Source: Trichosphaerium sp. ATCC 40318 (lineage: Eukaryota; Protista; Tubulinea). Taken from it: a DNA stretch of 64,000 nt. The notes beneath the pieces are model-generated. The model saw nothing but the letters and a program-made list of their open reading frames with translations, did not search any database and was not told the origin of the DNA. This document shows positions 14,674 through 51,835 of this stretch, one piece after another; within the stretch, counting starts at the first letter, position 1; every line of letters begins with the position of its first letter. A program made the translations under genes and the position numbers. The stretch lies in contig JALMLS010000289.1 in the NCBI GenBank assembly GCA_038496445.1, forward strand, positions 62,001 to 126,000, read 5' to 3'.

Positions 14674-14678
14674 TATTT

Positions 14679-14693
14679 TGGCGACACGACTCG
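14679..14693 (+). promoter_or_regulatory. Primer binding site (TGGCGACACGA...), complementary to a tRNA ending ...GUCGCCA (Arg/Ser-type discriminator G)
   Basis: TGG begins 5 nt after the 5' LTR. Confidence 0.65.
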
Positions 14694-14710
14694 AATTTGA
14701 AAACCAGCGT

Positions 14711-17700
14711 ATGACCGACAAACAGAAGACCAGACACACCAACGAACCTTACCTACAACGTACGCCTAAACAACAGCGTACGAAGAAGTTATCCGCCGGG
14801 GCTCCTAAGAAGAAATTCCAACGTAAAACCCATAAGAAAAAACCTGTCAGTACCAATCCGAAATCCCCTGAAGCTCTTCCGAAACCACAAATCACATCTC
14901 CGCCGCCATCCAAAAAAGCGGTAGTATCGATACCTAAGCTAGATAAAGAAAGTAAAAAGACCTCGGATATTAATAAAGAAATCACAACTGAAGTTATCAC
15001 ACCTCCGAACTCTCCGAGTTCTCCGACCAAGACAGTCCCCCCGGCTGTTCCGACAAGCTCAGACGTCATTAAGGAAACAAGTAAGCCCTGTGATACTGCT
15101 GAGCAGTTTGTACAACCTGAAAAAGGTGACGGAGAGAATATCACTCCCGTTCAATTATCCAAGCTGAAAACAAACAAAAGCTCTCCTCTTTTTGGGGATT
15201 CCAATGAACCCAGTGTTGATTCTAGCGCCTCTGTTGTTACCCCGGAAGTCGAAGTTATATCCGAAAAGAAGAGCCTATCGAAGAAAAGAGAAACGCTAAG
15301 TAAAAGAAGGTTGTTGCATTCGACATCGGAAAGTTACTCATCCAAGAGCGCTGACGAATGTAAGAAACGCGAAACAAAGAAACATGAGAGAAAGAAACAC
15401 TCCAAGAAAGTACACAAACACAAATCTAAGAGTCGCTCTCATCATCCACCCGATGATGATGACGACCCACCATCGTCTCCCAGTAACAGTGGAGATGGTG
15501 ATGATTGCCGTGATAGATCCCCTTCGAGACGCAAATCTAAAAAACGTAAGCGGCGTAGAGACAGTGACGAGCGCTCTAGTCGTTCGAGATCTGATCACTC
15601 CCGTGACAAACGTGATAAACGTGCTCGTAGAGGATCGCGGGATAAACGAAGAGAAATCGATCGCCTAGATGAGCTCGATGCCAATGGTGCTCCTAAATAT
15701 AGTGCCATGGTTAAAAGTATGCTTTTGAATTACCTACCGCACCGACATTACGAAAACGGAGTGGTTGTGGGCATCGATTGGAGTGATACAATCAAGCGAA
15801 CACCTAAACATAGAAATCCCGATTTAGAAAAATTCGGTGACAATGGTGATCTCCATGAATTTTTGCGTAGTGTTCAGAAATACGTCGACAGCAACAATTA
15901 CGATCAAGAAGCATACAACTATTGTTTACAGAATTATACCAAAGGCGAAGCCGGTGAGATAGTACACAATTTCAGTTTAAAGGATAAACCTCAAAAGATT
16001 CTTCACGCACTACTCGCTCGCTTTCGTTCATTCGCGGAAGTAGTCAAATCACAAAAGCAATTCAGTACTATGACACAAGAAGGGTTAAATCTCAACGTAC
16101 AGAATTGGTTTAGACAAGTCAAGAGTATAGGTGATTGTTCCCTATACAATGAAGAAGAACAAGCCGAAAAATTCCTTAACGGTTTACATACAAGCATCAA
16201 CGGACAGGTAGCGCTACAATTACGCGGTAAACAAATGGGTATACGATTAGCCGAAGCGTTAGAAATAGCATCCTATGCTGAAAGTTGTTTCGCATCAACC
16301 GCGCAAACGAATAATCAAATGAATTACATCAATCAAGCACAGAACCAATGGCTGAGACAACCTCAGGGTAACAACTGGCAACAGAATTACAATAACACAC
16401 CTCCATGGGTGAATGGAAAGCAGTCATCACAGCCTTATCAACAAAAACGACCTAGACCCAAACGGCATAATCGACATTACAATTCGAGAATTCGTCATTT
16501 CCAACAACCACCTCCTGGTTATGTCATGCATCGTGACAGGAACAAATCAGGTCCACCGCTTGATCGTGTCAACTTTCAAGTACCGTGTGAAAGGTGTCGT
16601 GCGGGTGGTCACCTTGCGCAAGAGTGCAGGACAAAGTTGACGGCTAAGAGAGAGTCAGTGTACCTTTCTTACGTATTCAGTCTCTCTGGTCAAGGTAACC
16701 ATATGGCCCTTATCTTAGATGACAAGAATATCGCTAGACCGCTCAATCCTGATGGTTCTTACCATCCTCCATCCAACAATAATCCTACTGCGTCAAATCA
16801 ACAGCAGTCTTATCCTTTGTATCAAAACGCGAATAACAATCAAAATAAATATTGGGGTCCTTATCCTTTGTTGGTGAATAACAAAAATATCAATAACAAA
16901 AATAATCCTTTTATTAAAAAACACGACAACCCCAACGCGTTAAATAATCATGAGAAAAATAATCACAAAGATGCGAATATCACGTATCATAATAATCCAA
17001 ATTCTCAAAATATTCCTAAATCCATAGAATATGATAATAATCCAACTTCCGCAGGTTACATCAACCTCGCGTATATGCATGCTAGTAAAGTGGTTATGGA
17101 CATCGATAATATCAATGTACCTACCTACTCATACAGCATAGCCAAAGCCAATGTCGTAGTTAATAGATCTACTGTTAATGCCATACTCGATTCGGGTGCT
17201 TCGGTTAGTATAGTTAGCTACAAGTTAGTTAACGACTTACACTTGCATTCATTAATCCAAAGGGTTAAAACCAGTCCCGTATTTACAGCTGACAACCAAC
17301 CAATGACATCAATGGGCATAATAGAGTTACCTATTCGAATAGGTAGTGAAAATTTCACAGTTAAATGTCATATTATGAAAAACTTTAAGTTCCCGTTGTT
17401 GTTAGGTATGAATATGCTGGTAGGCAATCAATTAACCATTGATTTTGCTAAAGGACAGTTACGTACAGCCAAGGGAACTACGATTAAGATGACGCAAACG
17501 CGTACTAAGGCTTACAAAGAGGGTGAAGCGCTGATTATTGCTGCGAATGATATTATCATACCTAAATTGTCACAAGTCACAGTATTCGCTAAAGTTTCGT
17601 CTCCTATTGTTAGTAAACTAGGTGTAGTACAAACAGTTAAGGCATTGGAGTTAGATGGTCACTCACAGTTGTTAACCGATACGGGAATACAACTCGCCGC

Positions 17701-20700
17701 CTCACTGAGTAGAGTAACTAAAAATATGGTACCTATACGAGTATTAAATGGTTATAACAAAGATATGCGTATACCACGTGGCTATCGCATTGCGCGATTT
17801 ACCGCGATTGATGAAACGCAAGAAATCAATATCCTTGACATTGACTACGACAAAGAGCTTCGAATTATCAATGAAACCAAAAAGCAAGTTACACCAGAAA
17901 TGCTGAAAAAAGCTAAAGATATGTACACACTTGAACAATCAGATATTTCTGAAGATCAGAAAGAACGTACTTATTATCTTTTAGCTCAATATCTGGACAG
18001 AGCTACTGAAAACCTCGAACAACCTGGGCGTGTCAAAGGAGTTGAACACTTCATTGATACACCTGCGGACATGAGACCCATTAGTATTCCTTATCGACAC
18101 CTTAATCCTAACAAAGAGAAAATCTTGCGTAAGGAGGTAGATAAGATGCTTAAAGATGGCGTCATACGACATTCCATAGAGTTCGCCTGTAGTGATTGTA
18201 CGTAAACCTTCGGGAGCTTGGCGTGTTTGTATAGATTTTCGAGCTCTAAATAAAGTTACAGCTAAAGATGTACACCCACTACCACGGGTTAAAGATCTTT
18301 TAAACGCGTTGAATCGAGCCAAATACTTTAGCTCGTTCGATGCTGTAGCTGGCTATTGGCAAATACCAATGCATCCTGCACATAGGTGCAAAACAGCTTT
18401 TGCAACTCGCTGGGGACTCTTTGAATTTATGGGAATGCCTTTCGGACTCAAAAATGCACAAGCTACATTTCAGCGTCATATGAATTTAATGTTATCAGGT
18501 TTACTATGGCAGGTATGCCTATGTTACGTCGATGACATTATTATATTCAGTGATAACTTTGATGACCACCTTGTACATCTCAAACTCATGTTCGACCGAT
18601 TACGCAAGTATAACGTTAAACTGAAAGCGAGTAAATCCGTTTTATTTCGACATAGCATTGAGTTCCTCGGTCATGTAGTAACTGCTGATGGAGTAGCTAC
18701 TAATCCACGCATTATTAAAGCGATAGCAGATGCTAAACGCCCTAATGATATCAAGGAACTTGAATCATTTTTGGGTATTACGGGATACTATCGAAAATTC
18801 GTTGCAAATTACGCACGCAAAGCGGCTCCTTTAAATGACCTCCGAAAGAAGGATACTCCTTGGATATGGACGTCTGAATGTGATAGAGCGTTCCTTAGTC
18901 TGAAGTTAGCGCTGATGACTCCGCCTATACTTCGACATCCTGATTTCGAGAAACCTTTTGAAATACATGTTGACGCTTCGGGACGTGCATGTGGAGGGAC
19001 TTTGGTTCAGCGCCATGAAGGAAAGCAACATGTGATAGCTTATTACAGCTATACGTTTAACGATTCCCAGCATCGATACTCTACGATTGATAGAGAATGC
19101 TTGGGTATAGTAATGGCTCTCAGAGAATTCCGTGGTTATTTATCATTTTCGAATTTTAAATTAATCGTGTACTCTGATCACAAACCATTAAAATACTTGC
19201 ATACTCTAAAAGATCCGCGAGATGTGGTAGCACGGTGGCTGATGGAAATTCAGCAATACGACTTTAATGTTGTATATAAAAAAGGTATTAACCACACCGA
19301 TGCCGACGCCTTATCCCGCAAACCTATCGCTCAATTTTGCAATGCTATGGATAAGAACATCCAAGCTGGATTAGATCTGGACTGGGCTATGTTACAAAAA
19401 CAAGACTCTACCACGAAAGCCTTCATTGATTACCTGAACGGTTCCAAGATACCTCATTACATTCGCAACCGTCAAAATTTCCATGAAGAAAATTTTATCA
19501 CTAAAGCGAAACAGCTGTCACTAGATAAATCTTCTGGAATACTGTATCATATCAAACGCGCACATCATGCAGCAGTAGACCCTAATCAGTCACATATATA
19601 TCGTATATTTGTGCCAGAAGCTATGTACAATGTCATATTACAACAGAGTCATGACATGCCTTTTGCGGGTCATTTTGGTTTTCTTAAAACATACCAAAGG
19701 CTATCTGAAAGGTTCTATTGGCCAGGTATGTATGCTGATACACTGTCATGGTGTAGATCGTGTACTACCTGTCAACGGAATAAAACAGCGAGAGTTCCTA
19801 AAGCGGGATTTGCTGTACCTTTCTCGATACTGGAACCTATGGAAATGGTTGCAATGGACTTGGTAGGTCCTTTACCTGATACACCTCGTGGTAAGAAATA
19901 TCTATTAGTAATAACAGATTATTTCACTAAGTGGGTTGAGGCCTTCGCCATTACCAGTAAAGAACCAAAAGAAGTAGCGTTTATTTTCGTTACAGAATTT
20001 TGTTTTCGTTATGGTATTCCCAAATGAGTGTTGATGGATCAAGGAAAGGAATTCGTTTCCCAGTTCTCGCAGAAAGTATATGATACACTGCATATTGATA
20101 AGCGACAAACCACTGCGTACCATCCGCAGACTGATGGTCAAACCGAACGTTTCAATCATACCTTGATTGAAATTATTAGGGTGTTTGTTAATCAACAACA
20201 GAACGATTGGGACTTTTGGTTACCTTATGCTTTATTTGCATATCGCACTGCTTGCCATCATGCCACACAATTTACTCCATTCCGGTTAATCTTCGGTCGT
20301 AAACCGAGATTACCTATTGACTTGATTAATGGTGATCAAGCAATAGTAATTCCTCAAGGTTACCGTGTTGGTAATTGGGCTGACAACTTAGCAAAACGCA
20401 TACAATACGCCTACAATATAGCCAGGACCAATATAATCAAAGCTAAACGAGACCAAGCTCGATATTATAATCGTCATCGACGAGAAGTAAATTACAAAGC
20501 TGGTCAATTAGTATGGCTGTGGATTCCAGCTTTAAAAGAAGATGAAAAGCGCAAGTTAACAATGCGCTGGAAAGGTCCATTCACTATACTACAAAAAGTA
20601 GGTAATAATACTTATCGTCTGGAACTTCCAGTGAACAGTCAATTATCACCAGTAGTGAATGTTGATAGGTTAAAACCAGTCATTGACTCATATCTACGAC

Positions 20701-21242
20701 CGCCTTCTAATAGCACTCCTATATCATCCAGAGATAGCTACCTACAACGGGACGTTGTGGCTCCGCCTAAAACAGATGGAGATAACAGTGAAAGTTATGT
20801 AGAACCAAATATCCCAAATATAACATCCGCTAAAAAACTTAGCAAACAAATATCATCCATACCTAGTAGAGCAAATATCCCAATAACTACAGCTGTACCA
20901 CATATCCATTCGCAGAAAATCACTGCTCAAGCTCCTAGTAAGAATAAAATATCCCGAAAGCGCAATCATAAGCCGCATCGAACAAATATCCTGTTGGAAA
21001 GGTTGAAAGAGCTAGCGACGGCCGCGTCTAGACTCGACAAATCCGTCCTAAAGGGTTCTTTATTGAACCTATTAGGAAAAGGTGCCGTCTTTATCCGCAG
21101 TTCAAGCCTGCAAGGGCAACTGGAACGCGAGATTAAAAGTTGCAAAAACGTGAAAGCGATGATTACTTGGTTAGATGCCTTGATCAAGCATTTTCATGAC
21201 CGGTTCTCATATGAGAAAGCGTTGGCAATGGACGACAAATGA
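14711..21242 (+). pseudogene. Single gag-pol polyprotein broken by a frameshift (about 18178) and an in-frame TGA (20025-20027)
   Basis: Zn knuckle CERCRAGGHLAQEC, protease LDSGAS, RT YVDD, RNase H VDASG, integrase HHCC zinc finger, DLVGP / DQG / ERFN core, GPF motif. Confidence 0.93.
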
Positions 21243-36311: not shown

Positions 36312-38205
36312 TTAGGTCACACTAATCGAGTTTACAGTATCTTCATGAGACTCCATATCAATTGTTAGAGTTGCTTTTGTGGTAATAGAAACAACTTTAC
36401 TAGGTTGAATCATCCACAATTGTAACTAAAGAGTCAAACAATTAGAAAAAAAAGATACATTGTTCTTTTTTTGAATCGTACAAAGTCTAGGACAGTACTA
36501 AGAAAGAAGAAGCTATACCAAACAATGGCATATCCAATAGGAGTATCTGTGACGCCACTAAAAAATAGAACAGAGTACATAATGATACCAAGGAGCCCAA
36601 AAACAAGAACAATCATTCTCCACAATACCTAAATAAGGCAAGTTCAGTTTGTATGCCTTTTTGCTTGTTTCTTTTATGCACCTTCTTAGCTGTTTTTGAA
36701 GCCTTACTTTTTTTAAGACCTGATAACAAGCTTTTTATTACAATAACGGCAATAGCAATAGAATATATAAAAGAGGCAACAATCGTTAATATCTACAAAA
36801 AACTAGATTAGTATTCAACGAAAAGTTGTTTTTTTTTCTTATTGTGGGTTCATTGAATCCTCTTCAAACAGGTTCGTACAATCATTGCTTCTGCTATTGT
36901 GCCAATGAAATCAACGCCAAAATCCATAAAAGCTTCGAGACCTTGAAGTACAAGAGCAAAAACCATAACAATGAAGTATCCGTAGAGACCATATTGGAAC
37001 TTTTTCAAAAAACGTGTCACTCTCCTGTTTTGTTTCATGATGATTTGGTGCCTTAGATCTCATGTTAGTTAAATATCACATTACTAAATCATTGATAACA
37101 TACCAGTACAAGGAAATCAGGAGAGACGCAGCAACACTGCCATAAAAAGTTAACAAAACTATCGTTTTGGTTAATAATAGAAATACGTGCGTGAGAGCAA
37201 TGGAGAGTGTGTAGGCTAGTAGAATTATAGGTGAGGGGTATAGTTTTAAGTAACCCATTGGATCAACACCTTGAGTCATGTTAGAACAGTAGTAACAACT
37301 CGGAAGATAACGCACAATGAAAAACAAGCCGAGTCAGTATTGCCATTATTTCTATTACGATACAAACTGTTGGTACTGTAGCAGCGAAGCAAGTACCATT
37401 TATTTCGGCATTCATATAAAGCCTAGTAACTTGTTAACGTCAAATTCAAGTATGACGAATATCACGTGTACCTGTACAAAGCAAATCCAAAAACCAAAAA
37501 GTTGAAAGCGATTATTGAAACTTGCCAAGCAATGAACCAACCACTCTTGAACATTTCTCTCCACGGGTTATTATCAGGCCACGCGTTCACATATACAATA
37601 TCATTCGATTTAACTAACTCATACGATAGCTCTGACGCCTTAACCTCAGCTACAGGCACCTTTATAAAAGAGTTAAAAAAGTGTAAGAAAAAAGTTTTGT
37701 TTTAGCATCAAATTGGGAAAACAGCATTCTACTTGCTCTGATGTCTTGTTTATCCTTTAATAGGACATATTCTCCGCGTCCAGGGTCATCAGCACGGAAT
37801 ATAACGCCTAAAGCGCCTTTGTTCTGAAACTTTATTATAATTTCTTCTAAACGCTCATCTCTTGTCTCTATGAGTACCAGAGAACCTAAAATACGAATAA
37901 AAATGATCAAACACCGCGTCAGAGCTTCCCAAATCAAAAAAAAAAGACAAACGGCCAAAAGGCAACGTACCTGTTATATTTTGAGAGCTCTCTGGTGTCA
38001 GAGTAACGTTATTGAAGTTCCAATCGATTATATTGTTCGGGTACTGTAGCGGCGCAAGTGACGCAGTTATTGGCTCTGTCGCAAGCATCTCGAGCGAGCA
38101 TTCGCCAGAATAAGCGAATACCGTTATAATCAAGAGCAAACTCAAGAATAACGCCTTTGCATTACTCAATCGAGTGTCAGGTTTTTTGTTGCTGCACGTG
38201 CTCAT
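36312..38205 (-). CDS. Membrane receptor-like protein: signal peptide + PA (protease-associated) domain + about 7 TM helices
   Basis: KFQNKGALGVIF and VPVAEV PA signatures, then NPWREMF and 6-7 hydrophobic helices; stop TAA at 36312-36314. Confidence 0.7.
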
Positions 38206-38471: not shown

Positions 38472-41400
38472 TCATTTTCTGCTTACAAATTGGACTGATT
38501 GCAATTCGCGTAGTGACTTTACAATATGAACGACATGGTTTGTATCGGGGTCAATGATATTTAGAATACTTCCTTCATCTTTGATAATAGACGTCACATT
38601 GTCTGGAACTGTGTTATTATCCAAAATGATAAACTTCACCTTCATTCTGGACAATGCTCTCGTCACCAACTTCTTCTGCATCATGTTTCCAATGAGCAAT
38701 CCGATTAGAATATCTCCATTACAAGGACATAAAGTAATATTGATAACAGTTCCATTTGAGGTTAACATTTGTACACTTGATACAACATTTTCAATATTCA
38801 AATCTACATTATTCAGTTAACATCACAAAGCCCTCTTTTTGTACACAGCGTACCAGGAAATACCGACTTTAAGTATTCAAAACTGTAATCATAAGCTGGA
38901 TGCAAGTAAGAACCTACAATGAGAACTTCTAGGTTATCTGGAACGAAGTCTGACAGCTGAATGACAACTTGGTCATTTCTCCTAAATACAACCTGTCAAC
39001 GAGAAAAATAAGAGACAGCAGATAATAGCGTACATGCCACATGTGATCAAAAGATCTATGTTGTGTGTTGAATTCAAGAACGTGTCAACAGTGTAGACAA
39101 TAACAGATATAAGCGATCGGCGACTAAACATAAAGTGTTAGTTTGTTAACATGATGATTTCAGTACTCTAAACATAAGTGCTGTGGCACATTGTCATGAA
39201 CAACACAACCTATATAAGCGCTATGCGTAGAAGAAAGTATTTCTATAGCTTCTTGAATCACATTCTCTAGACTGACGCTACAGGAACCAAGTTAGCACAA
39301 AGTAGAAGTAAAATAATCAAAAAGTAGTTTTACGTTTTCATAGTGCTAATACTTTCTCTGTCCGTCAATAAACCCTGCCATTGTCGCACTCGCTGTAGTT
39401 TTTCTGTAACATACGTGTTGCCCTTACAAGCTTCAATGACTTCGTCTATAGAGGCTAAAGAAGCTGTAACAACCAATGATGTCAAAGGGTTGCCACTTGA
39501 AATTTGAACACATTCGGTTTCTTGTAAAGTTGGATACAAACGTTTCCAAACATTTGGAAGAGTAACATCAAGGCAAGGAGCATAACGTGATTCAGCAAGC
39601 TAGAAATACCATCAAAAAAAACTCAAGAGGTACTTACGTACCCTCAAATAACCTTCAGCTGACTGTGCCATATCATGAGCAAAGCAGAAGTCAGCTGCTA
39701 TCTTACAAGCAAGTGCAGCAAAGTTCCAAACACCTTCCTCATCTAACATCTTCCTTATCGCCTCGTACTCAACGAGTATGTCCTTTGGAACAATATCTGA
39801 TCTGGACTGACGTAGATTCCATTGGAGATTGCATAGATTAAGTAAAGCTGTGCAAGCCCTACCGAGCTGCCATGTTAAGAGTTGATTAAGTTGTTCCTCC
39901 AATTCTTTTCTAACTTAACTTAACTTTGTTTAAGCAATAATAAAAGCGTCAATCGTACGTATCATCATCGTTCTTTTCCTTGTATGTTGTCTTGTACAGA
40001 AAGTATGCAAACTCACCATACATATGACCGAGCCATCCCCACCATACTGTAAACTCATCAACCTCAGGATGAATTTCTTCCAAAGTTTCAAAATCGTTTC
40101 GTAGGATCAGGTTTACTGTAATAAAATCTACAAATGTCCTCCTACACGTATGCTTAGAACACTTCTCCCAATGCTTGTAAATTACTCCTTACATTCCACG
40201 GTATGGCTCAGGTAGCTTGCAAATTTCTTGAAAAGCTTTCGTGGGTTCTACGCGCCCAGTACGAACTTGTAAAGCATATACTGCACCAGCAATTGTATCA
40301 ATATACCTGTAGTTAAAAGGATAAGCTCTTAGAGCAAAATAAAATCTCATGGTACCCAGGATAACTGATATTCGTTACACGAAACAACTCCTCTGCTTCT
40401 TCCAGTGCGACATCAAGCTGTGCTTTGTCTGTGGTACATAGTAGCTACAAAGGAATAGATTAGCCCAGGAGATAACAAGTATTAGACAAAAACAAATTAC
40501 TATAAGCATGCATAGTTGTTTTGAAGAAATAAAAAAAAATGTTGAGAAGGTTTTGAGAAATGAACTAAAAAACGACTAAATGTTTTGGTTTATCATTCGA
40601 TATCCGGCACAAAAAAAAGTGCTACACAAAGCTATTGGAAAGAAGTTGATTGCAACTATAATTTTGACGTACTCCTTTGAATATCAGGGTACAAAACCGA
40701 ACGAAAAAGATGGTAATAAAGTCACCCTCGCTTGCTGCGAAAATTTCAGCTTTTTTCCAAAGCTCTTCAATGTTTTCTTTGTTTATAACAGGAAAGAAGT
40801 ACAAAACAAGAGTAACAATAGAAGTTGCAACGTTATGCTTGTCAGGTGCACGGAGAACTGTAATCAGCCTCATGGCAGTATCTCTTTGCTTGGCACTGAC
40901 CAAGAAATATATTATTGGTCCAACAAGTGCCTGTCTCTCGCATACAAAGTCATCGTGTTTTAGGGATAACTCTAGAGGAAGACGGATGAGATCCACAAAC
41001 ATTGTATTTTTTTGTACCCAGCAGCGTCAATGAAAAGTAAAAGAAAGGACCTAGAAGTCCCAGGAATTGCGCTAAAAAAGTGAATACTATAAATAACAGC
41101 GTGTATAACCTGCTACGACTGCATAGGCAGTAATTTCTCCGATATCTCTGAACTCTGTATTGTAATTGTTACACTGTCTTTCAAGACGTTCCACAAGCGC
41201 ATCAACGTCTGTGATCAGAGGTAGTATACGATTTTCTAGTTCCTGAGCATCTTTTAGTACTATGTTAGTAACTGCAAACCGTACACGCAGTTCTTTACAA
41301 CCAGGCACAAGTTCTGAAGTAGGTTTGTTTAAATCTATGAGGCCCATAGATTTCATACAATGTCTGGCACTCTCAAGCATTTCCATATATCTGAAAGTGT

Positions 41401-44400
41401 TCCAATGTACCCTTACCTGTACAAAATGTGCCAGTGCCTGCATTTAAGAGTGAATAACAAATGCACCTATATTTCGAAGTACCTTTTGTTCCTTAGTAGT
41501 TGCATGCTTAAATAATGTTTTGAGTGTCTTTTCTGTCCTCTCAGTATCACTAGCTGTTTCCTCTGCACGCGATTATTAGGAGAGGAGATATTTTACACTA
41601 GAACAAAGATGTGGTTACCTAGAAGAGCTTCACATCTGCTCTTTATGACGTGAACTCTCCAAGCAATGTCGTGATCACGTTTCCATATTTTTTCCTCCCC
41701 GAGTAGACTCAGTATATCAGAAGTATACTTCAAGGCGCTACTATTGTTGTAAGCCAAGCTAGCAATGGATGCACCTTTGAAAGAAACTCAGATTCACGTT
41801 ATTGCAGGATATCCTTACCAGCTAGAAGGTGCTCGCTAACAAGCATCTTTTCTTCATCTCTGACACAAGATAGACCTTGACTGAAACTTTCCGCTATCAG
41901 TTGTGCATCTAAACAAGAGGTTAAGACTTTGATTTGAAGCTTGAGAAAAAACCAAGAAATAAAGGTAATAGTGAGTCTTTTCGTACTTGACCGCCTGGCT
42001 TTTTGTGTAAGTGCTATACCGATTTTGTAATGCATTTCTTCTTTATTTACTATCATTCCATAGATTGCAACTTTAACTTGGTTATGAACAAACTTGAAAG
42101 CCTTTCGTTTCTTTCTTCTTGACTTTTCTAAAAAATCATTTTCAATCAATTCAGCGATCAATGGCTTTAAACTCTACAAAAATAAGTATCCGTTATTTCT
42201 ACATAACACCATAAATTTCAAATCGTACAGGTTCAGATGATGACAAAGATATGCTATCAACAGATTTTTTTGAAGTGAGTTTTGCAGCCATCTTTGTGCA
42301 ACCCTCAAGTTTTCCTTTGGTCTGTGTAAAAGTCAATACAGTGAGTTAAAGATTTACCAAACTGTATGAATTACCATCCTGAAATACGGTCGAAGTCGAC
42401 GCATCATTGACATTGTGATATCGCTATGAATGCAACTCGAGAGAAGAAGAAGTTGTAATGCATCTTCACTCAAAAATCTGAGCTTATAAAGAATGATCTT
42501 ACTCTGGAGTATAAGCTTCTTTGTTTTTTCAATCTGGCGTTCTAATTCTTCACCTGATAGATCTTTGTTTGCATAGGGTTCAAATTGTTTCTCTATTTCT
42601 TGTATAAGTCGCTATAGAAGAGGTGCAGGTAGTGTAGTAGGTACCTGAATCCAAAAATGAGATGATTTTATTGATATGAAATGCATTCCCTTTTGTGATG
42701 TCCAGTAGTAGAGAAGCCAGCTTCTCAACGTTATATATATTACTGCAGTTATTATTGAGCCAAGAAGTAATGCATTCTATACTAAGACTACTTATTTCTA
42801 TCTCCTTCACTTCAGAGATAGCCATCTTGGTAATATTGTTAATCATATTCTACAATTTAGTAAACATTCTTTCAGTAGTTTTGTTTGTGTACTCTGTGTT
42901 TCGGATGTAGTTCCCCAGACCTATAAGTAGCTGCAACAAGAAGATTTGATACTGATTCAGAAGTCAGCAACATCTCTAGAAGAGTTAAACTGTTTCTATC
43001 AGCCCAATGAAGATCATCCAGAACAAGAATCTATCATAAAAATAAACATAAGGAAAGAATATAAACGAACTACTGCATACCATACGGCGACCACCTTCAG
43101 ACAATAACCTGAAAAGCATTACAATAACACCTGAAAGTTGTTTAGGATCTTCTATAGCTCGTTCTCTGCTCGTAGATACAACCTAAGTGTACGATATTAG
43201 CTACGTCATAAAAGTGCTATCTGATAACACGTGCCTTTCCAATAAGCTTAGAAAATAGCGGTAGAATAGAACATAACTGTGATAACGAATCTTTTGGCAT
43301 ACGAGCAAGCAATAACGATTTTACCCTCGTCAATTCAAAGTGTGATTCTTTATCAATCATGGTTTCAATGATATCAGTGATAGCACTCAAGATTGGTCCA
43401 AAAGTTGTAGTATCTCCTCTGTTCCACTTTCCAAAGCCACTACCACCGTTTTCTGACACGTAATCTACTACACGCCTTATGAACATCGACTTTCCAGCTC
43501 CGGATTCAGCTGACAATACCACAAACAAATTTCTTCTGTTTACAATATCTGCAATGTTTGTAACAGCATGCAATGCCATTTCCTCCCTATCGAATTATGG
43601 TTTAGTATTAGCTTTACTCGAACCGAACCTTCCGTATAATACATATCTATCACTCTTTGATTTACTGTCACTATAGATAGGTAGCTTATGTTTCATCTCA
43701 TCTGTGACGATAAGATTTGCAATGACTCTGTAGAGCATTGAAATTATTTCTTCGAAATTCGGACGCTCTTTTTCATCAGTTGCCCAGCAGACTTTTTTGT
43801 GAGAAGGAAAAGGTCAGGTTATGTAATTTCAACATTTGCTTACCTTTGATCAAGTCTTGTAGCCTTTCATTTGTACAATTAGATAGTGGAGGACGCTCGC
43901 CGCTTAGAAGCTGCTGTTGGGATACTAATCTACCGAAGGGAGCTTGGTGTGCAAGCATTTCCCATAACGTAATACCATACGAATACACGTCAGCTTTGAC
44001 CGTGTAATCCTGACTTGTATACACTTCAGGAGCCATATAAGGGACAGTGCCTGTCAATTGTGTATGCAACACTTCTGATGCATTTACTGAAGTTCCAAAA
44101 TCTACATTTAAAAACATGAAATAAGAACGTAGGTTCTTTGTTGTTAACGTTGTTCGTACCAGTTAATTTTATGCTAGGATTCCCAGCATAGCTTTTTAAA
44201 GATGTAACTAGAATGTTATCTAAGAAACATTAGATAGTCTATCTTGTGGGACGTGCATTGTTAATACCAGGCTTCAGATCACGGTACAAAATAGGGCAAG
44301 GTTCATCATTTAGTCGAAAAGTATGCAAGTATTGCATGGCTGCACTCAGTTAAAAGTAACGATTTCACAACTGCTTGTACCTTTTGCTATGTCTAAGGCT

Positions 44401-46669
44401 ATTGATATATAAGACTTCCAATTATCAAGAGGACTTGGCCTAAGTGTATGGATCAGTATATCAAATTGTGAATTTAAAGCTAACTTAGAATGAATGATAT
44501 CCCAAAGCGATCCTAGCTCAACAAATGGAACCAAAATGCACATAGAGGAGCCTTCCATACATGCACCAACTAAGATGGTATTAATTTAGATGTAATTTAA
44601 ATAAGCATGTGTGCATACGCATGTCAATGATACAAGGATGAGATAATTTTCCCAACATAGATACTTCTCTTTGGAACTCTGACAAATATTCTTGATCTTG
44701 GTAATGCTTCACAGCAACTACTTGCCCTTTATATTTGGCTTTTACAACATTTGCCGGACCACCTCTATCTAATAATGGTGTCAACATAAATAAACGAGGG
44801 TTACACAGTACGCACTTATAGTAACAATGTCATCGTATTCGTCTTTTTCAAAAATTATATCCTTAAATCTGACCGTGTATTGAGTTGTTGTGCTAGAAGT
44901 ATGGATCCTATTTGATATCGCTCGGAACCTCATTCATATTTTTAGAATAATATAAGATTATGTACTTTACTTACCACATCTGGCTGTCTTTGTGAGTTTT
45001 ACAAACGAGCGTTAAAGTGGATTTTGCAATAGTTAACACCAAAGCTGGCTTATTTTTGAAGTTTGTATTTTTTATCTTTGTTGTTTCTGTGATCTGGTAA
45101 CTGGCTCCAACAATCTGCATCTAGATGTAATGTGTTATTCGCATTAGTACATAAACGATAATATACCTTTGCATCTTCATAAGAATGGAGAACGCTGCCA
45201 CGCAACTCAAAGTAATACTTTGTACGTTCGCTTTTAAACAAAACTGATTTTTTCACAACCGTCATGAAACCCGCACATACTACCCCGCCAATAGCTACGT
45301 TCTTTCTCCCCGCCTTCTTAGACAACTTGGCTGTATCCACCCATAATTTTGAGAGTATTAAGGTGCTTTCATCTTTCTGTAAGACTAACAACATATTGCT
45401 TGAAGCAACTATTTTGACAATGAGGTTCTTGCTTTTAAAAGTCTTGATCGGAGTTTCTTGATCACGCTCTTGTTGATTATAAATCACAATCTTGTCATTG
45501 TTAAAGCTACAACCCAACATATCATCTGGTAGCAACACAAGTGCAGACACTAGAGTCAAGTCAAAACAAACAGTGTAGCAAGTGTAAAATGAGTTTTTCG
45601 TCTAGAAAAAAAATAGAACAAAATATTTCAGGGAGCTGTACTGGTAGTGGTTTACCTCTAGTGGAAAGCTGTGTGAGCAGCCCAGCGTTTTCATTTATTT
45701 CTACTTTGTTGACATTGAACAACAGCTTTACAGCAGTGAGACTGTACGCTTTTATCTTCCCATGTAAATCACCAATGTATAAAATAGTGCCACGAACAGC
45801 CATAGAAGTAGGTGCAGCGTCAAGCTGAACATCATATGAAAAGGAAGAAGAACCACTATGGCTCACATAAAGTGTGCTTGAAGAAGCACAAATGACGTAA
45901 TTACCTACGACCTTCATTAAAAAACAAAACTCCCAAAATTCCAAGAAATTTCATATTGTGAAATGACAAGTTGCGTGAGCTGTGAGGCTGTGAGGTTGTA
46001 CCATGAATTCTTGTAAAGAGTAAAACGTCATCACCAGAGACTATTGTGATCACTTTCCCTGTATTCAAGTTAACACATACCATTTTATTACTATGTGCTA
46101 TCAGAAGCTTTTCTTCTTTTAGAATAGAAACACTATCATCCACCAAAGTTAACGGGATTCTAACGTCTTTTTGTAGCGTCAAAGCGCCAGTATCATAGTC
46201 TAGGTTATATGCGGATTTCGAAGCGTCAATAACAATGCATCTGATCTCATTTGGGATGACCTGGAAGAAGGTTAATCAAAACTTGCTCTAAAATAAACAA
46301 ATCTGTCTCATACAGCCAATATTCTTTCATCCTTAATCGATGCGCCTTCAGATAGCTCCTCGGTTTCGATATTGTATACATAAACAACGTCTTTTTCTGC
46401 CTTGTCTTTTGTAAGCGCTATAATATATGGCCATACGCATTTTGCACGCGAAACAACGGCAGGGAACTGTATTATTCGTTCCTTGCTATTTTCGTTTGCC
46501 GATATCAGTACAACTCTTGGCAAAACCATCAGAACACGTTAAAACTGCTAAATTACTTTGTAGATTTGTTATAGCATGATAAAAAGTAGTTGGGTTCTAC
46601 AAATGCCGTGGCGCTTCGGGAGTAAACTTTACCGCCTAAATAAGGTTCTATTGTTGAAATTATATCCAT
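38472..46669 (-). CDS. Large multidomain signalling protein: beta-propeller, PH, TKL kinase, STAND/AAA_16 NTPase, TPR-like helical region, degenerate HisKA/HATPase, receiver-like tail
   Basis: VAVK, YRDLKPDN, DFG and GTVPYMAPE kinase motifs; SAESGAGKS Walker A; LVLDDLHWAD Walker B; TKGNAFH; FKFVHNQV; NPLTSL and NGTVINITL histidine-kinase remnants. Confidence 0.8.
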
Positions 46670-47138
46670 TTCTTCATCAATGGCGAGTGTTCTGAGTTGT
46701 AGCGTTGCCAATTACTAAATTGTTTGAGTTAATTAAGTTAACCTCGAAGGAGAATCTAGCATACTTTCCTGAAACAGCAGTAATTTTATGAACTTTAAAC
46801 ATACGGCATTCACCCAATAAATCCACGTACTCAAAGTGAGCTACATACAAACTCTTGAACATACTTCTATGGAGTGTCAACCGCACAAACACATTTCTCA
46901 GACTTATATTACAAATGTTGCTAATGTTCATACTACTACATGGAAATAGTTGTAAAGAATATTGTGTACTGAATATGGTGACGTTGCACGTTACAACAGT
47001 GTACCTTCACAAATAGAAAAGAAATAGAAAGCGAAGAAATTTGGTCAACTTTGTTTGTACATTGGGTTTTAAAATTTATTATTTTTTTTTGCGCAATTAA
47101 AAAAAAGTTCTTAAAGGGTTTTCTCATTTTGGCTGCCC

Positions 47139-50100
47139 TTATGGCTTCATTGCAACTGTCCATTTTACAAGTCTTTTCAATCCAACCATAAGTTTAGAAC
47201 CAAACTGACGGTAATGTGCTTTTGAAAACTCTGCCCACGAGGCGTTTGCACCGTCATAATTACCAGAATGTATAAGATTTATAAAATTAAGCAAAGCAAC
47301 CTCTTGAGGGTCTGCATAAGCATTTGCTTGAAGTTTCTTTGCAAGTTCGTTAAACCTAGAAGCAACATCTGATATATCTTTATCTGCTTGACCACCCTAG
47401 ATTACAATGTAAGCGAAACAAGAAGAGAAAAAAATTGAAAGAAAATACAAAAAAAAATACGTACTGTTTTGGCCTTGCACTTATTTAAAACCTCTCTACA
47501 CTTAGCTAATATCTCCTTTCCTTTTGCTGTAATTTTTATCACCTTCTTTGGTGGAGGTGCTGCTTTAGGTTCAGGACGTTTTGGTGCTGCTGCTGCAGGT
47601 CCTGGAGCTCTCTATCAAAAAAGTTAGAACTGTAGAAAATAAAACTTGATCATACATTTCCTCGAACTTGAGTGACAGGAGGTGGTCCAACAGCACCTGG
47701 ACGCGCTACTTGGCGGTTAGGAGCACCTGGACGAAAGCCAGTGTTAGCTTGCATGCCTGGTCCCCTATTTAATGGTGCTCCAGGTCCACCCATAACTGGT
47801 GCTCCTGGTCCACCCATTGTAGGTGGTCCACCCATAATATTAGGTGTCATTGCGGCCATGCCTGGCCCCATGTTTAATGGTGCTCCAGGTCCACCCATAA
47901 CAGGTGCTCCTGGTCCGCCCATAACAGGTGCTCCTGGTCCACCCATTGTAGGTGGTGCCCCTGGTCCAAGAGGATCTAGTACATAGTTAATAGAGAATTA
48001 AAAGAGTAGGTTGTAAAAAAAACTTGTACCCATCATATTCATTGCTTGTGGTGGACCCACCGTAGGCTGAGGACCGGGTGTTTTGTTAATTCTTGGTTGA
48101 GTATTCTGGGGCGTGAGTCCTGGGGTTTCAGGCATACTCCTTGGTCCCGATCGCTTAACTCTTCGCTTCACTTTCGAGTTCGATTTTGGTGGAGGCGCAA
48201 CAGCTCGGGCCTTACCACCATATACAGGCGGTGGCCTACGATCAAGTGGCCCTGGTCCACCGACTTGAGGAGCGGCCGCTTGTACCATGTTATTTCCAGG
48301 TGTAAACGCACCAGGTACAGCACCAGACATACCACCTACAAAAAAGTAAACCACAACTCAAAAAAAAAATGGTAAAAGGTCTTTCCGTACCAGGTACATT
48401 ACCACCAGGTGCTACTATACCAGGCGGTGCTACTGGTCTATATCCATGTGTAGTCGCAGGAGCAGGTCCATTGCTATAAGTAGGCGTAGGTACCATACCA
48501 GGTCCACCAGGTCCCATGGTAGGTGTAACAGGAGAAACGACTCCTGGGTGCATCGGAGTTGTTACAGGTTGAACTGGTGGCATCCCATTTGAGTAACCTG
48601 AAGGTTGATAACCTGGCGTATAACTCGTTGCAGGTATGGTAGAAACAGCAGGACCTGGGCTACCATATCCAGCATATCCACCACGGTTAGGTGTGTTTGG
48701 CTGTGTGAATCCTGTAGCACCTCCGCGCTTTGGTCTGGACCTTGTATTGCTACGTTGTGATACTCCAGAAGCAGTTGGTACTGTGGAATTTTCTGTTGTG
48801 AATGGGAAAGCTGGTGGACTCTGTTTGAGACCAAGAGCGTTGTAAACACGATCAAGAAGTACACCACCTTCTGTTTTTGTGAATTTTGGGTCTCTCATAT
48901 GCTCCAAGTACGGCATAGCTGCTTGAAGCCTTCCTTGAGATGCCAAGATCTTGGCATATCTTTAAGAGAGTAAGTATACGTCATTTTAAACGAATTGGAA
49001 CGCACTCTGTGTATTTTGAAGCAAGAAGAGAAGAAACTTCTGTAGGTGCATTAGCATGAGTTAATATCTCCACACGCTCAATTAAATCTTGTAGATCATC
49101 CAACGGGTTAACTGATCGTTTCTTTTCCTTTTTTTTAAAAGTTAGATAAGGACGCATTGCGTAGTTAAGTCAATAAACGACAAAACGAAAAAAACAGAAC
49201 ACTTTGAAGCATGCGTACTTTTTGAAGCCAAAACTCAATAGCTTTGTCATTTTTACGTGCACATATATAACACGTCAAGGCATTGTAAAAATTACCAGTT
49301 TTATCTTGTGATAGGCGATCTCCTAGAGTCTCACATAGCTCAGCAGCTTCTTCTGGTGTTGCATAGCAAATAAATGTAGCAAGTGCTTGCCGCCAATATT
49401 TTAGCTCTACATCTGCAGCAATACGCTTAAAGTCATTGTTTACAATAGCAGAAACTAATGTCATAAAAGGTCTCTTTTTACGTTGTGCTTTGAGGTAGCT
49501 CGCCTGAGAAAACGTCAGATTTGATCCTATACTCTTTTTTTTCACAATGTACCTGCGCTAGGTTCCATAATGAAGCGTCTGGCGATGCCTTAGCAATAAC
49601 CAATGCATCCGCATAACGTCCTACGCGAAAGCAAGCCTCTACAGCACCACGTAGGTTACCAACCATCAAAGATCTTCAAAACAAGTTAGAAAAGTAATTA
49701 AACTATTAATGAATACCTTGCTATAGCTGTTTCAATCTTATCAGCACTTTCAAACCTCATAGGCGTTGATTTTCTCTTTTTAATTTTTGTTGGTGTCTGT
49801 AGTTGTTCCATAGTATCAAAAGCAGATGTTTCGCCTTCTTCACCAATACCAAAACCATCTGACGCTGTTTTTAAACAGAATAAGCAACAAAAAAAAACAT
49901 GAAGAATGAACAAAAAAATCGACTTTTTGTTTACCTGACACTGCTTCTTTAACTGGCTCTTCGTACTCTTCTTCATCTTCAGGATTCTCCAAAAGACCTT
50001 CTCCAGGGTACTTAGATAGAAATTTTGTAACTTCCTCAGCGACTTTATCAGGTGCAAACCCAAGGTATTTCATTAAATGATCTCTATTTTCTTCTGCATC

Positions 50101-51835
50101 AAATGTTGCTCCAAGGAATCCCCATATTTGTTTTTCTCCTTTGTCCTTACAGTTCTCGGCTTTCTGTACGCAATACTCTCTGTAGTTTGCATTTTTGAGT
50201 ACATTCTGAAGAGCATCAGCGCGCTTAGCGACTTGATTTTCTGTAACAACTGTCGACACCTAAAAAGGGGAAAAAAATCAATACAACAGACCAACATAGA
50301 AGTCTTTCGAAAACGTACTTTAACGCTTGTTTTAGCTGCTGTGATAAGTTTACCACCAAATCCGAATGTGGCGCTGCAAGGTCGCTAGTATAAAATCAGA
50401 AGAGGTTGAGAGCAAATTGAGACATACAGCTAACCATCTTGGTGGTTTTTGAAGTACCATGCCTTCAGTACCAATATCTACAAGCGATAGAACTTTAATC
50501 TACAAAAAACCAAAAATTAGCATTACAGAAAGAATAATCATTTTGACTTGCCTTGTTCTCTAGAGAAGCTGCTGAAGCAACGGCATTTATACAAGGAGAC
50601 CATTGTACATCAACATTCCATTTAGCAGATGTTTCGACCTTAAGACATAAATAAGCTAAAGAATCTTTGTTGTTTTTGAATAGGGAATTAAAAAAAAAAG
50701 AGTTGTTTACCTCGCAAAGCACTTCTCCTGTTGATACATCCCAACATAATGTTTTATTATCCTTACCACTCGATAATAGTAAATTTGTGTCAACATCACA
50801 CCAAGACAGAGATAGTACACCCTTAGTATGTCCACGGAAAGTCTACAATTAAAAAAAAATTAAATACAACTTCAAACAAAACATGTCTTGAATCTATCAT
50901 CAACACGGCGTAAAAAGTACCTTGATAGGTCCAGCATATGTATTCTTTAAATCCCACAATTGAATAACTGGATTATTATCGTCTTCAGATGCAGTTAGAA
51001 GTTGTACATCCTAACAAACAGCATAAGAAAAAAGACAAACAAAATGTCAAACAAAAAAAAAAAAAAATACGCACAGCTGTAGGGCTCCAAGCCATAGCTT
51101 TACATTTACCGATAGAATCAGCAAAACTAATGATATGACGTCCTTTTCTCAAGTCCCAAATAGCAGTAAAACCATCATGAGAGCATGATCCGAGGATATG
51201 TGGTACTTTCTTATTCCATGACACGCAACTAATCTTTCCTGAGTGAGGAGACTGTGGTGTTTTCTGAACTGGTTGTGCTGGATTCTTTACGTCCCAAATT
51301 ATAATCTAAGCGTAATATAAGGTATATTTAGTGAAATGTAGTGTGTACTTTGCCGCTAGTATCACCAGAAGCGAGAAATGATTTATTGAAAGCATTAAAC
51401 TCTAAAGCGCCTACTGGTCCTTGGTGTTGTATTGGTGCCGATAATTGAGACTTGGAAATGTCTCCTCTGCAAAAAACGTTGGCAAAACTTTCTAGTTTTT
51501 TTGGAGTTGTTTACGTACCCATTTATAAACGGAGAAGGGTTATATAGTTGAACAGCGCCATTAGAAAAACCACCAGCAATAATACCGTATGGTGTCGCTG
51601 GAGTGACGTGTCCCCACACTAGCCTGTGCGCACGCTCTGTAGTAGAAATTTTACCAAGGGAACGCATTTCTGACGATCGAGCCTTTAAATTCAAGTCAAA
51701 TAACTCTACAGTGCCAGAGGCATCGAAATCGAGCGACATTGTTCCATGAAGTGTAGCTGTCGCCAAGTAACCCGGATGCTGTGTGCAAGGGCTCCAGGCC
51801 ACTGCGCTTGTGAGATTTACCTCCTTTAGCTTCAT
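47139..51835 (-). CDS. SEC31: COPII outer coat subunit Sec31
   Basis: [18 protein letters not shown]40 repeats, [22 protein letters not shown]1 helical region, Pro/Gly-rich region, C-terminal helical domain. Confidence 0.96.

Follow-up and report, generated by a model that had tools for sequence, protein, structure and literature searches.

A window of 64,000 nucleotides (nt) of DNA from Trichosphaerium sp. ATCC 40318 (assembly GCA_038496445.1, contig JALMLS010000289.1, positions 62,001-126,000 of the forward strand) was analyzed; all coordinates given below are those of this window. Its minus strand carries an intron-rich gene whose predicted product contains a TKL-type protein kinase directly followed by a STAND NTPase of the AAA_16 family. 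Judging from the sequence, both the gene and the kinase-STAND fusion are real.

Between positions 38472 and 46862, both strands contain only short open reading frames (ORFs). When the minus strand is read in three frames, a chain of open segments with short GT...AG stretches between them can be seen. The gene model was built using a codon table trained on long ORFs of the window and a dynamic-programming splice parser, and was curated by hand in three places. A first automatic model, which fused the downstream gene to the gene of interest and omitted kinase exons, was discarded. The model that was retained (Table 1) begins with the ATG codon at 46862, with alternative start codons near 46931 and 46669, ends with a stop codon at 38472-38474 and requires neither frameshifts nor stop codon read-throughs. 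Its introns are of the GT-AG type and are 38-97 nt long, plus a single 228-nt intron at 40672-40445. The codon score, a weak statistic, is ca. 0.15 bit per codon in the gene and ca. 0.05 (0.047) in noncoding DNA; the N-terminal region scores comparably to the remainder of the gene. Exon borders beyond the part of the gene that has homologues, chiefly 46001/45904 and those in the 41110-40193 interval, are tentative.

Table 1. Coordinates of the predicted gene and of features assigned to it (aa, amino acids)
Feature	Position	Strand	Description
Whole gene	46862..38472	-	35 exons (~34 introns), ~2145 aa; splice parser and hand curation
N-terminal region	45293..46862	-	aa 1-412; beta-leaning composition; propeller only a lead
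PH-like stretch	44898..45292	-	aa ~413-506, exons 6, 7 and 8; sequence pattern only
TKL-type kinase domain	43712..44879	-	aa 513-803, exons 8-14; Pfam, PDB matches, motif positions
Exon 14	43629..43791	-	kinase end (ERPNFEEI) and start of the AAA_16 module (LYG of LYG/REEMA)
STAND NTPase module	41991..43648	-	aa 825-1263; AAA_16 P-loop plus helical and winged-helix part
Walker A, SAESGAGKS	43487..43513	-	
Walker B, ILVLDDLHWAD	42998..43030	-	signature of the AAA_16 / MalT-like clade
Helical region	39271..41990	-	aa 1264-1928; mostly alpha-leaning, without recognizable family
228-nt gap	40445..40672	-	single long intron of the gene, or gene boundary
C-terminal beta-leaning region	38475..39270	-	aa 1929-2145

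The kinase and NTPase core

Pfam and PDB (phmmer) searches, as well as Atlas language-model and AlphaFold runs, were performed on exon pieces, one by one. Four exon pieces matched the Pkinase or PK_Tyr_Ser-Thr families of Pfam, the best E-values (3.9e-14 and 2.2e-11, respectively) being obtained with the exon that extends from the DFG to the APE motif. This C-lobe exon scored 46.6 bits against TKL kinases in the PDB, where its best matches were ZAK/MLT, TAK1, TNNI3K, DLK, CTR1, B-Raf and RIPK1, and at most 31 bits against sampled kinases of bacterial kinase-AAA_16 proteins. The best PDB matches of the N-lobe exon were TNNI3K and LRRK1. Since TKL kinases outscore the kinases of the bacterial fusions that were fetched, we consider the kinase to be of the eukaryotic type.

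The catalytic residues are retained: K554, E568, D667 of the YRD motif, N672, the DFG motif at residues 691-693 and the APE motif at residues 714-716. The YRDLKPDN sequence is encoded at 44292-44215 and KLTDFG at 44169-44088. The set of residues present suggests that the kinase is probably active. An earlier note made from the DNA sequence had proposed a TKL kinase at this position, and the proposal is borne out by exon-by-exon testing: the Pfam matches are significant, all best PDB matches are TKL kinases and the catalytic residues are in place.

Two exons of the following module matched AAA_16 in Pfam (4.9e-05 and 2.9e-06), and in the Atlas language model the exon with the Walker A motif grouped with AAA_16 clusters (0.95). 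NACHT-like Pfam models were marginal (E 0.034 for NPHP3_N), AAA_16 being the best family. In addition to the two Walker motifs, the earlier note had listed the sequences GNAFH and FVHNQV as marks of a STAND NTPase; all four were found, the Walker motifs at the positions given in the note and the latter two at 42696-42673 and 42098-42075, both in the arm behind the P-loop domain.

The exon with the Walker B motif (ILVLDDLH) retrieved 66 bacterial loci from species-representative genomes. Among these loci are several for proteins of the Pkinase-AAA_16-TPR-guanylate cyclase type and one for an AAA_16-GAF-HisKA-HATPase protein. A profile prepared from 58 bacterial AAA_16 homologues matched residues 825-1263 of the spliced model with 115 bits (E 2e-37; envelope, residues 805-1440). 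The kinase and the NTPase of the spliced model aligned as one segment (residues 547-1183, E 8e-25) with bacterial Pkinase-AAA_16-cyclase fusions. The best full-length comparator, P0093, a 2434-amino-acid cyanobacterial protein with the domain order Pkinase-AAA_16-GAFx3-HisKA-HATPase-REC, aligned with residues 635-1374, i.e., over 740 amino acids, with an E-value of 3e-25. As in Pkinase-AAA_16 kinases, a kinase is directly followed by AAA_16 with intact Walker A and Walker B motifs on one polypeptide. The collinear alignments and the profile match thus uphold the suggestion of the earlier note that a TKL kinase has been placed on a scaffold of the COG3899 type.

Close relatives of the gene were absent from the protein and metagenome sets searched, for which exon-sized queries are weak; DhkG-like full-length eukaryotic proteins lay outside this search. 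A HMMER search with the NTPase exon against 1.84 billion representative proteins revealed no real relative; its sole match, P0001, a 1479-amino-acid protein with tandem repeats of ca. 55 amino acids, was rejected as a spurious low-complexity match. A word-indexed search of a 5.8-billion-cluster index with the NTPase exon and the kinase exon retrieved no matches. The kinase exon matched 17 loci in a metagenome scan, all of them through the kinase domain only. Two of the 17 (L078:956-1651 and L079:3478-4173) match the C-lobe and extend to the Walker A region, with 27% identity over residues 623-864, and are probably further kinase-AAA_16 genes; the others are unrelated TKL kinases. No paralogue of the gene was found elsewhere within the window.

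Regions on either side of the core

The earlier note had described the part of the protein that precedes the kinase as a beta-propeller joined to a PH domain, and neither of the two could be confirmed. Exon pieces of the N-terminal region produced no Pfam or PDB matches even at E<=10, no internal repeat was significant (best score of 41 versus 35 +/- 5 for shuffled sequences), and the AlphaFold model of one piece, calculated from a single sequence, was uninformative, with a predicted local distance difference test (pLDDT) score of 34.6. The Atlas language model provided leads. For one N-terminal piece, these were the Vps41, VPS11_N, WDR19 and VID27 propellers (0.87-0.89), and for a second piece, the VID27, CNH+PH and LRRK2 propeller families (0.76-0.79). 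The named leads from both pieces are all propeller or propeller-plus-PH families; their scores are below 0.9, and the recognition values are 1706 and 2060. We treat the putative N-terminal beta-propeller as a lead.

The adjoining PH-like stretch displays a basic beta1-beta2 segment and a C-terminal helix with a Trp residue (KDSQMW). Its two halves are located in different exons and frames and were searched separately; neither matched in Pfam or the PDB, and the exon with the PH-like sequence had no match in the metagenome scan. From the sequence pattern, a PH-like module at residues ~413-506 is probable.

One can also suppose that the N-terminal ca. 500 amino acids are a lineage-specific region of some other fold and that the novelty of a propeller combined with a PH domain is illusory. 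The outcome of the Pfam, PDB and repeat searches, none of which was significant, agrees with this, as do Atlas scores below 0.9 with low recognition values and the uninformative AlphaFold model. However, two independent pieces gave solely propeller or propeller-plus-PH families among named Atlas leads, the composition of the region is beta-leaning, and residues 413-506 appear to have the length and the strand pattern of a PH fold as well as its C-terminal Trp-containing helix. We therefore regard a different fold as possible but doubtful.

On the other side of the core, the TPR-like helical region of the earlier note is upheld as far as its alpha-leaning composition is concerned, but not as TPR, since no exon piece matched TPR in Pfam. 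Homology to bacterial proteins, in which TPRs are located further downstream, reaches only residues ~1263-1440. In the last ca. 880 amino acids, neither TPR nor GAF, HisKA, HATPase_c or REC domains were detected by Pfam and PDB searches of exon pieces, and the AlphaFold model of the C-terminal exon piece, calculated from a single sequence, had a pLDDT score of 39.0. Residues 1504-1624 (41110-40673, minus strand), encoded by the least certain exons, contain several hydrophobic stretches, in which the Kyte-Doolittle hydropathy peaks at 1.7-2.0. They could represent helices buried in the fold, errors of the splice model or membrane segments; the transmembrane reading was rejected because the peaks are no higher than those within the kinase.

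The domain order of P0093 raises the possibility that the protein descends from a kinase-AAA_16-GAF-HisKA-HATPase-REC protein of the DhkG or group X type. It would then be a decayed hybrid histidine kinase (HK) from which GAF and every catalytic box of the HK and receiver domains have disappeared, leaving a scaffold with the TKL kinase as the sole live output. P0093, with its 740-amino-acid alignment, has exactly the domain order required, and HKs that include kinase or AAA domains have been described in Amoebozoa (PMC4758236, PMC6324907). The N-box segment of a profile prepared from 136 HK cores fell on residues 1931-1984, which is the C-terminal position expected for a remnant. However, the match scored -2.8 bits, 16 of 500 shuffled sequences scored as well, and the aligned N-box lacks the Asn. 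A custom REC profile had no matches in the spliced model, with a custom GAF profile 285 of 500 shuffled sequences scored at least as high as the real one, and Pfam and PDB searches likewise gave no match. The best PDB match of the exon at 39651-39794 (minus strand, residues ~1793-1840) was the receiver of yeast SLN1, which was not significant (E 0.21); it lies upstream of the N-box hint and is thus not collinear with the canonical HK-REC order. Finally, bacterial relatives with a different output, the cyclase, align equally well. The HK and receiver hints are unproven, and we consider descent from a hybrid HK to be rather unlikely. A dead histidine kinase plus receiver within residues 1929-2145 lacks statistical support, given the negative bit score of the former and the blank profile search for the latter.

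Extent of the gene and its surroundings

The modules of the protein do not coincide with exons. The beta-rich N-terminus ends within exon 6, which also encodes the PH-like stretch up to its middle, the last part of this stretch shares exon 8 with the start of the kinase, and exon 14 spans the junction of the kinase and AAA_16, across which the alignment with bacterial fusions is continuous. Since the modules are bridged by exons 6, 8 and 14, the N-terminus, the PH-like stretch, the kinase and the NTPase belong to one reading unit. The stop codon of the upstream minus-strand neighbor is at 47142 and the downstream neighbor starts at 38205. The intergenic spacers on both flanks are thus 266-280 nt long, compared to gaps of at most 97 nt throughout the 46862-40673 interval.

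The claim of the earlier note that a single gene occupies the locus therefore holds from the N-terminus to the NTPase; further downstream, the 228-nt gap is a possible boundary. Should there be two genes, gene A (46862-40624) would end at the in-frame TAG codon at 40624 and encode the N-terminus, the PH-like stretch, the kinase, the NTPase and ca. 620 amino acids of helices, while gene B would encode ca. 560 amino acids starting from the ATG at 40350. Both the in-frame stop codon and the downstream in-frame ATG are present, the 228-nt gap resembles the local spacers and lies far outside the 38-97 nt of the other introns, and homology to the bacterial family ends before it. On the other hand, the gap has a donor that fits the consensus (GTACGT, at 40672) and a good acceptor (TTTGTAG, at 40445), which are both in phase 0 and join open frames. 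The exon at 40444-40356 has a coding-like score of 0.185 bit per codon (0.047 in noncoding DNA), whereas the tail of the would-be gene A scores -0.02, which is noncoding-like. In members of the family, 750-900 amino acids separate the NTPase from output domains, which fits the length of the product of one gene. With the evidence weighed, two genes appear unlikely, and the 46862-38472 interval is, as far as can be judged from the splice signals and codon scores, probably a single gene. Whichever reading holds, the listed domains are located upstream of the 228-nt gap, except for part of the helical region.

The upstream neighbor (47142-50500, minus strand) has multiple exons, a long repeat rich in Pro and Gly (GGPGAPVM units) and a weak match to TPR_Sec16 (E 0.0023); it probably codes for a Sec31- or Sec16-like COPII protein. 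The product of the downstream neighbor (37662-38205, minus strand) has, directly after its initial Met, a hydrophobic segment resembling a signal or an anchor and has no Pfam match. A long terminal repeat (LTR) retrotransposon is located at 14678-21242 (plus strand). Its three adjoining long ORFs, which look intact, encode an aspartyl protease; RVT_1 with RNase H and an integrase zinc domain; and an integrase SH3/C-terminus.

Proposed mode of action and comparison with known systems

Kinase-AAA_16 proteins are common in bacteria and have kin in fungi and slime molds. Little is understood about the control of an attached kinase by a STAND switch, and the majority of eukaryotic members are classified simply as histidine kinases. 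We lean, with modest confidence, towards the view that the locus is one intron-rich gene whose product consists of ca. 410 beta-rich amino acids of no recognized family, a probable PH-like module, a seemingly competent TKL kinase, an AAA_16 STAND NTPase with a helical and winged-helix arm, and ca. 880 unassigned, mostly helical amino acids, and that this product is a STAND-switched signaling protein.

The product would be a large cytosolic signaling protein. By analogy with the STAND NTPases MalT, Apaf-1 and NLR proteins, its NTPase would serve as a switch governed by nucleotides. Once the flanking regions sense a cue, autoinhibition would be lifted and ATP-dependent self-association would follow, which would bring the kinase domains together and result in trans-autophosphorylation, followed by downstream Ser/Thr signaling. 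The N-terminal region could place or cue the protein, and would do so at the membrane if the PH reading is right. We infer this NLR-like, oligomerization-activated mechanism from what is known of the other STAND proteins.

Several points weigh against the view of a STAND-switched signaling protein. The Gly-loop of the kinase is degenerate (NRGGPA), with one of three glycines kept, and DhkG has a related kinase domain for which inactivity is predicted (PMC1420674). The splice model is based on weak codon statistics, homology backs residues 513-1440 only, and the 228-nt gap could detach the last ca. 520 amino acids as a separate gene. Oligomerization is argued by analogy, and the putative sensor regions have no recognized fold.

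A bolder version of the proposal can be formulated, in which the gene is one member of a multi-copy family of NLR-like sensor kinases that is confined to amoebae. Members of such a family would have arisen from a kinase-AAA_16 hybrid HK whose two-component output decayed; they would have gained a propeller and a membrane-binding PH domain, and their oligomerization-activated TKL output would possibly serve in antibacterial or antiviral defense. We consider this version very unlikely.

With a seemingly active TKL kinase and no detectable HK output, the gene would offer a clean example, from a eukaryote, in which to study how a STAND module controls a Ser/Thr kinase. The gene also illustrates the re-use of a scaffold of the two-component type. 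Its value is moderate, because the fusion at its core was known before and the potentially new parts are unproven.

Proteins of the kinase-AAA_16(-GAF-HK-REC) kind have been described in bacteria, fungi and Amoebozoa (PMC1420674, PMC6324907, PMC4758236). DhkG of Dictyostelium contains a eukaryotic protein kinase (ePK) domain, predicted to be inactive, and its orthologues are said to exist in cyanobacteria and fungi (PMC1420674). A TyrK-type domain is present in both DhkG and PpallHK13, and the topology of fungal group X also occurs among amoebozoan HKs (PMC6324907); HKs with kinase or AAA domains were reported in Physarum (PMC4758236). In PknK of M. tuberculosis, a kinase is joined to a MalT-family domain (bioRxiv 10.1101/2022.02.17.480717). 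Since DhkG, group X proteins, amoebozoan HKs and PknK have been described, the kinase-STAND core is of a known kind, and of the unfamiliar architecture claimed in the earlier note, the N-terminal additions remain. Within the kinase-AAA_16 family, the gene appears to be set apart by its long N-terminal extension and by the absence of a recognizable two-component or cyclase output.

The likeness to proteins of the COG3899 / PknK type consists of a kinase, an AAA_16 P-loop (GxGKS, hhhhDDLHWAD) within ca. 40 amino acids of it, and then a helical arm. Unlike these proteins, the amoeba protein has a TKL-like kinase, a preceding region of ca. 510 amino acids, ca. 34 introns in its gene and no recognizable cyclase, HK, LuxR output or TPR. 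With P0093, fungal group X proteins and DhkG, it shares the order of kinase, AAA_16 and long helical region and, with DhkG, also a TyrK/TKL-like ePK domain. No GAF, H-box, N/G1/G2 boxes or receiver are detectable in the amoeba protein. The cited literature does not mention an N-terminal extension like that of the amoeba protein for any of them. In addition, the kinase of the amoeba protein keeps the catalytic residues, while that of DhkG is predicted to be inactive.

Like Roco / LRRK proteins, the predicted protein is very large and multidomain and has a TKL kinase beside a regulatory NTPase; LRRK1 is among the PDB matches of the N-lobe, and a propeller is often a feature of Roco / LRRK proteins. 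The "Roco/LRRK-like" wording that the earlier note applied to the kinase is thus apt in the sense of TKL. It does not extend to the NTPase, which is AAA_16 (STAND) rather than Roc-COR and is placed after the kinase, and no leucine-rich repeats were detected. Membership in the Roco family was rejected, as Pfam searches of all exon pieces gave AAA_16 and neither Roc nor COR. In comparison with NLR / Apaf-1 STAND receptors, the NTPase belongs to the AAA_16 / MalT-like clade and not to NACHT or NB-ARC, which places the protein outside the NLRs proper. What it has in common with these receptors is the logic of their organization, in which an effector domain, a STAND NTPase and a repeat or helical sensor are combined.

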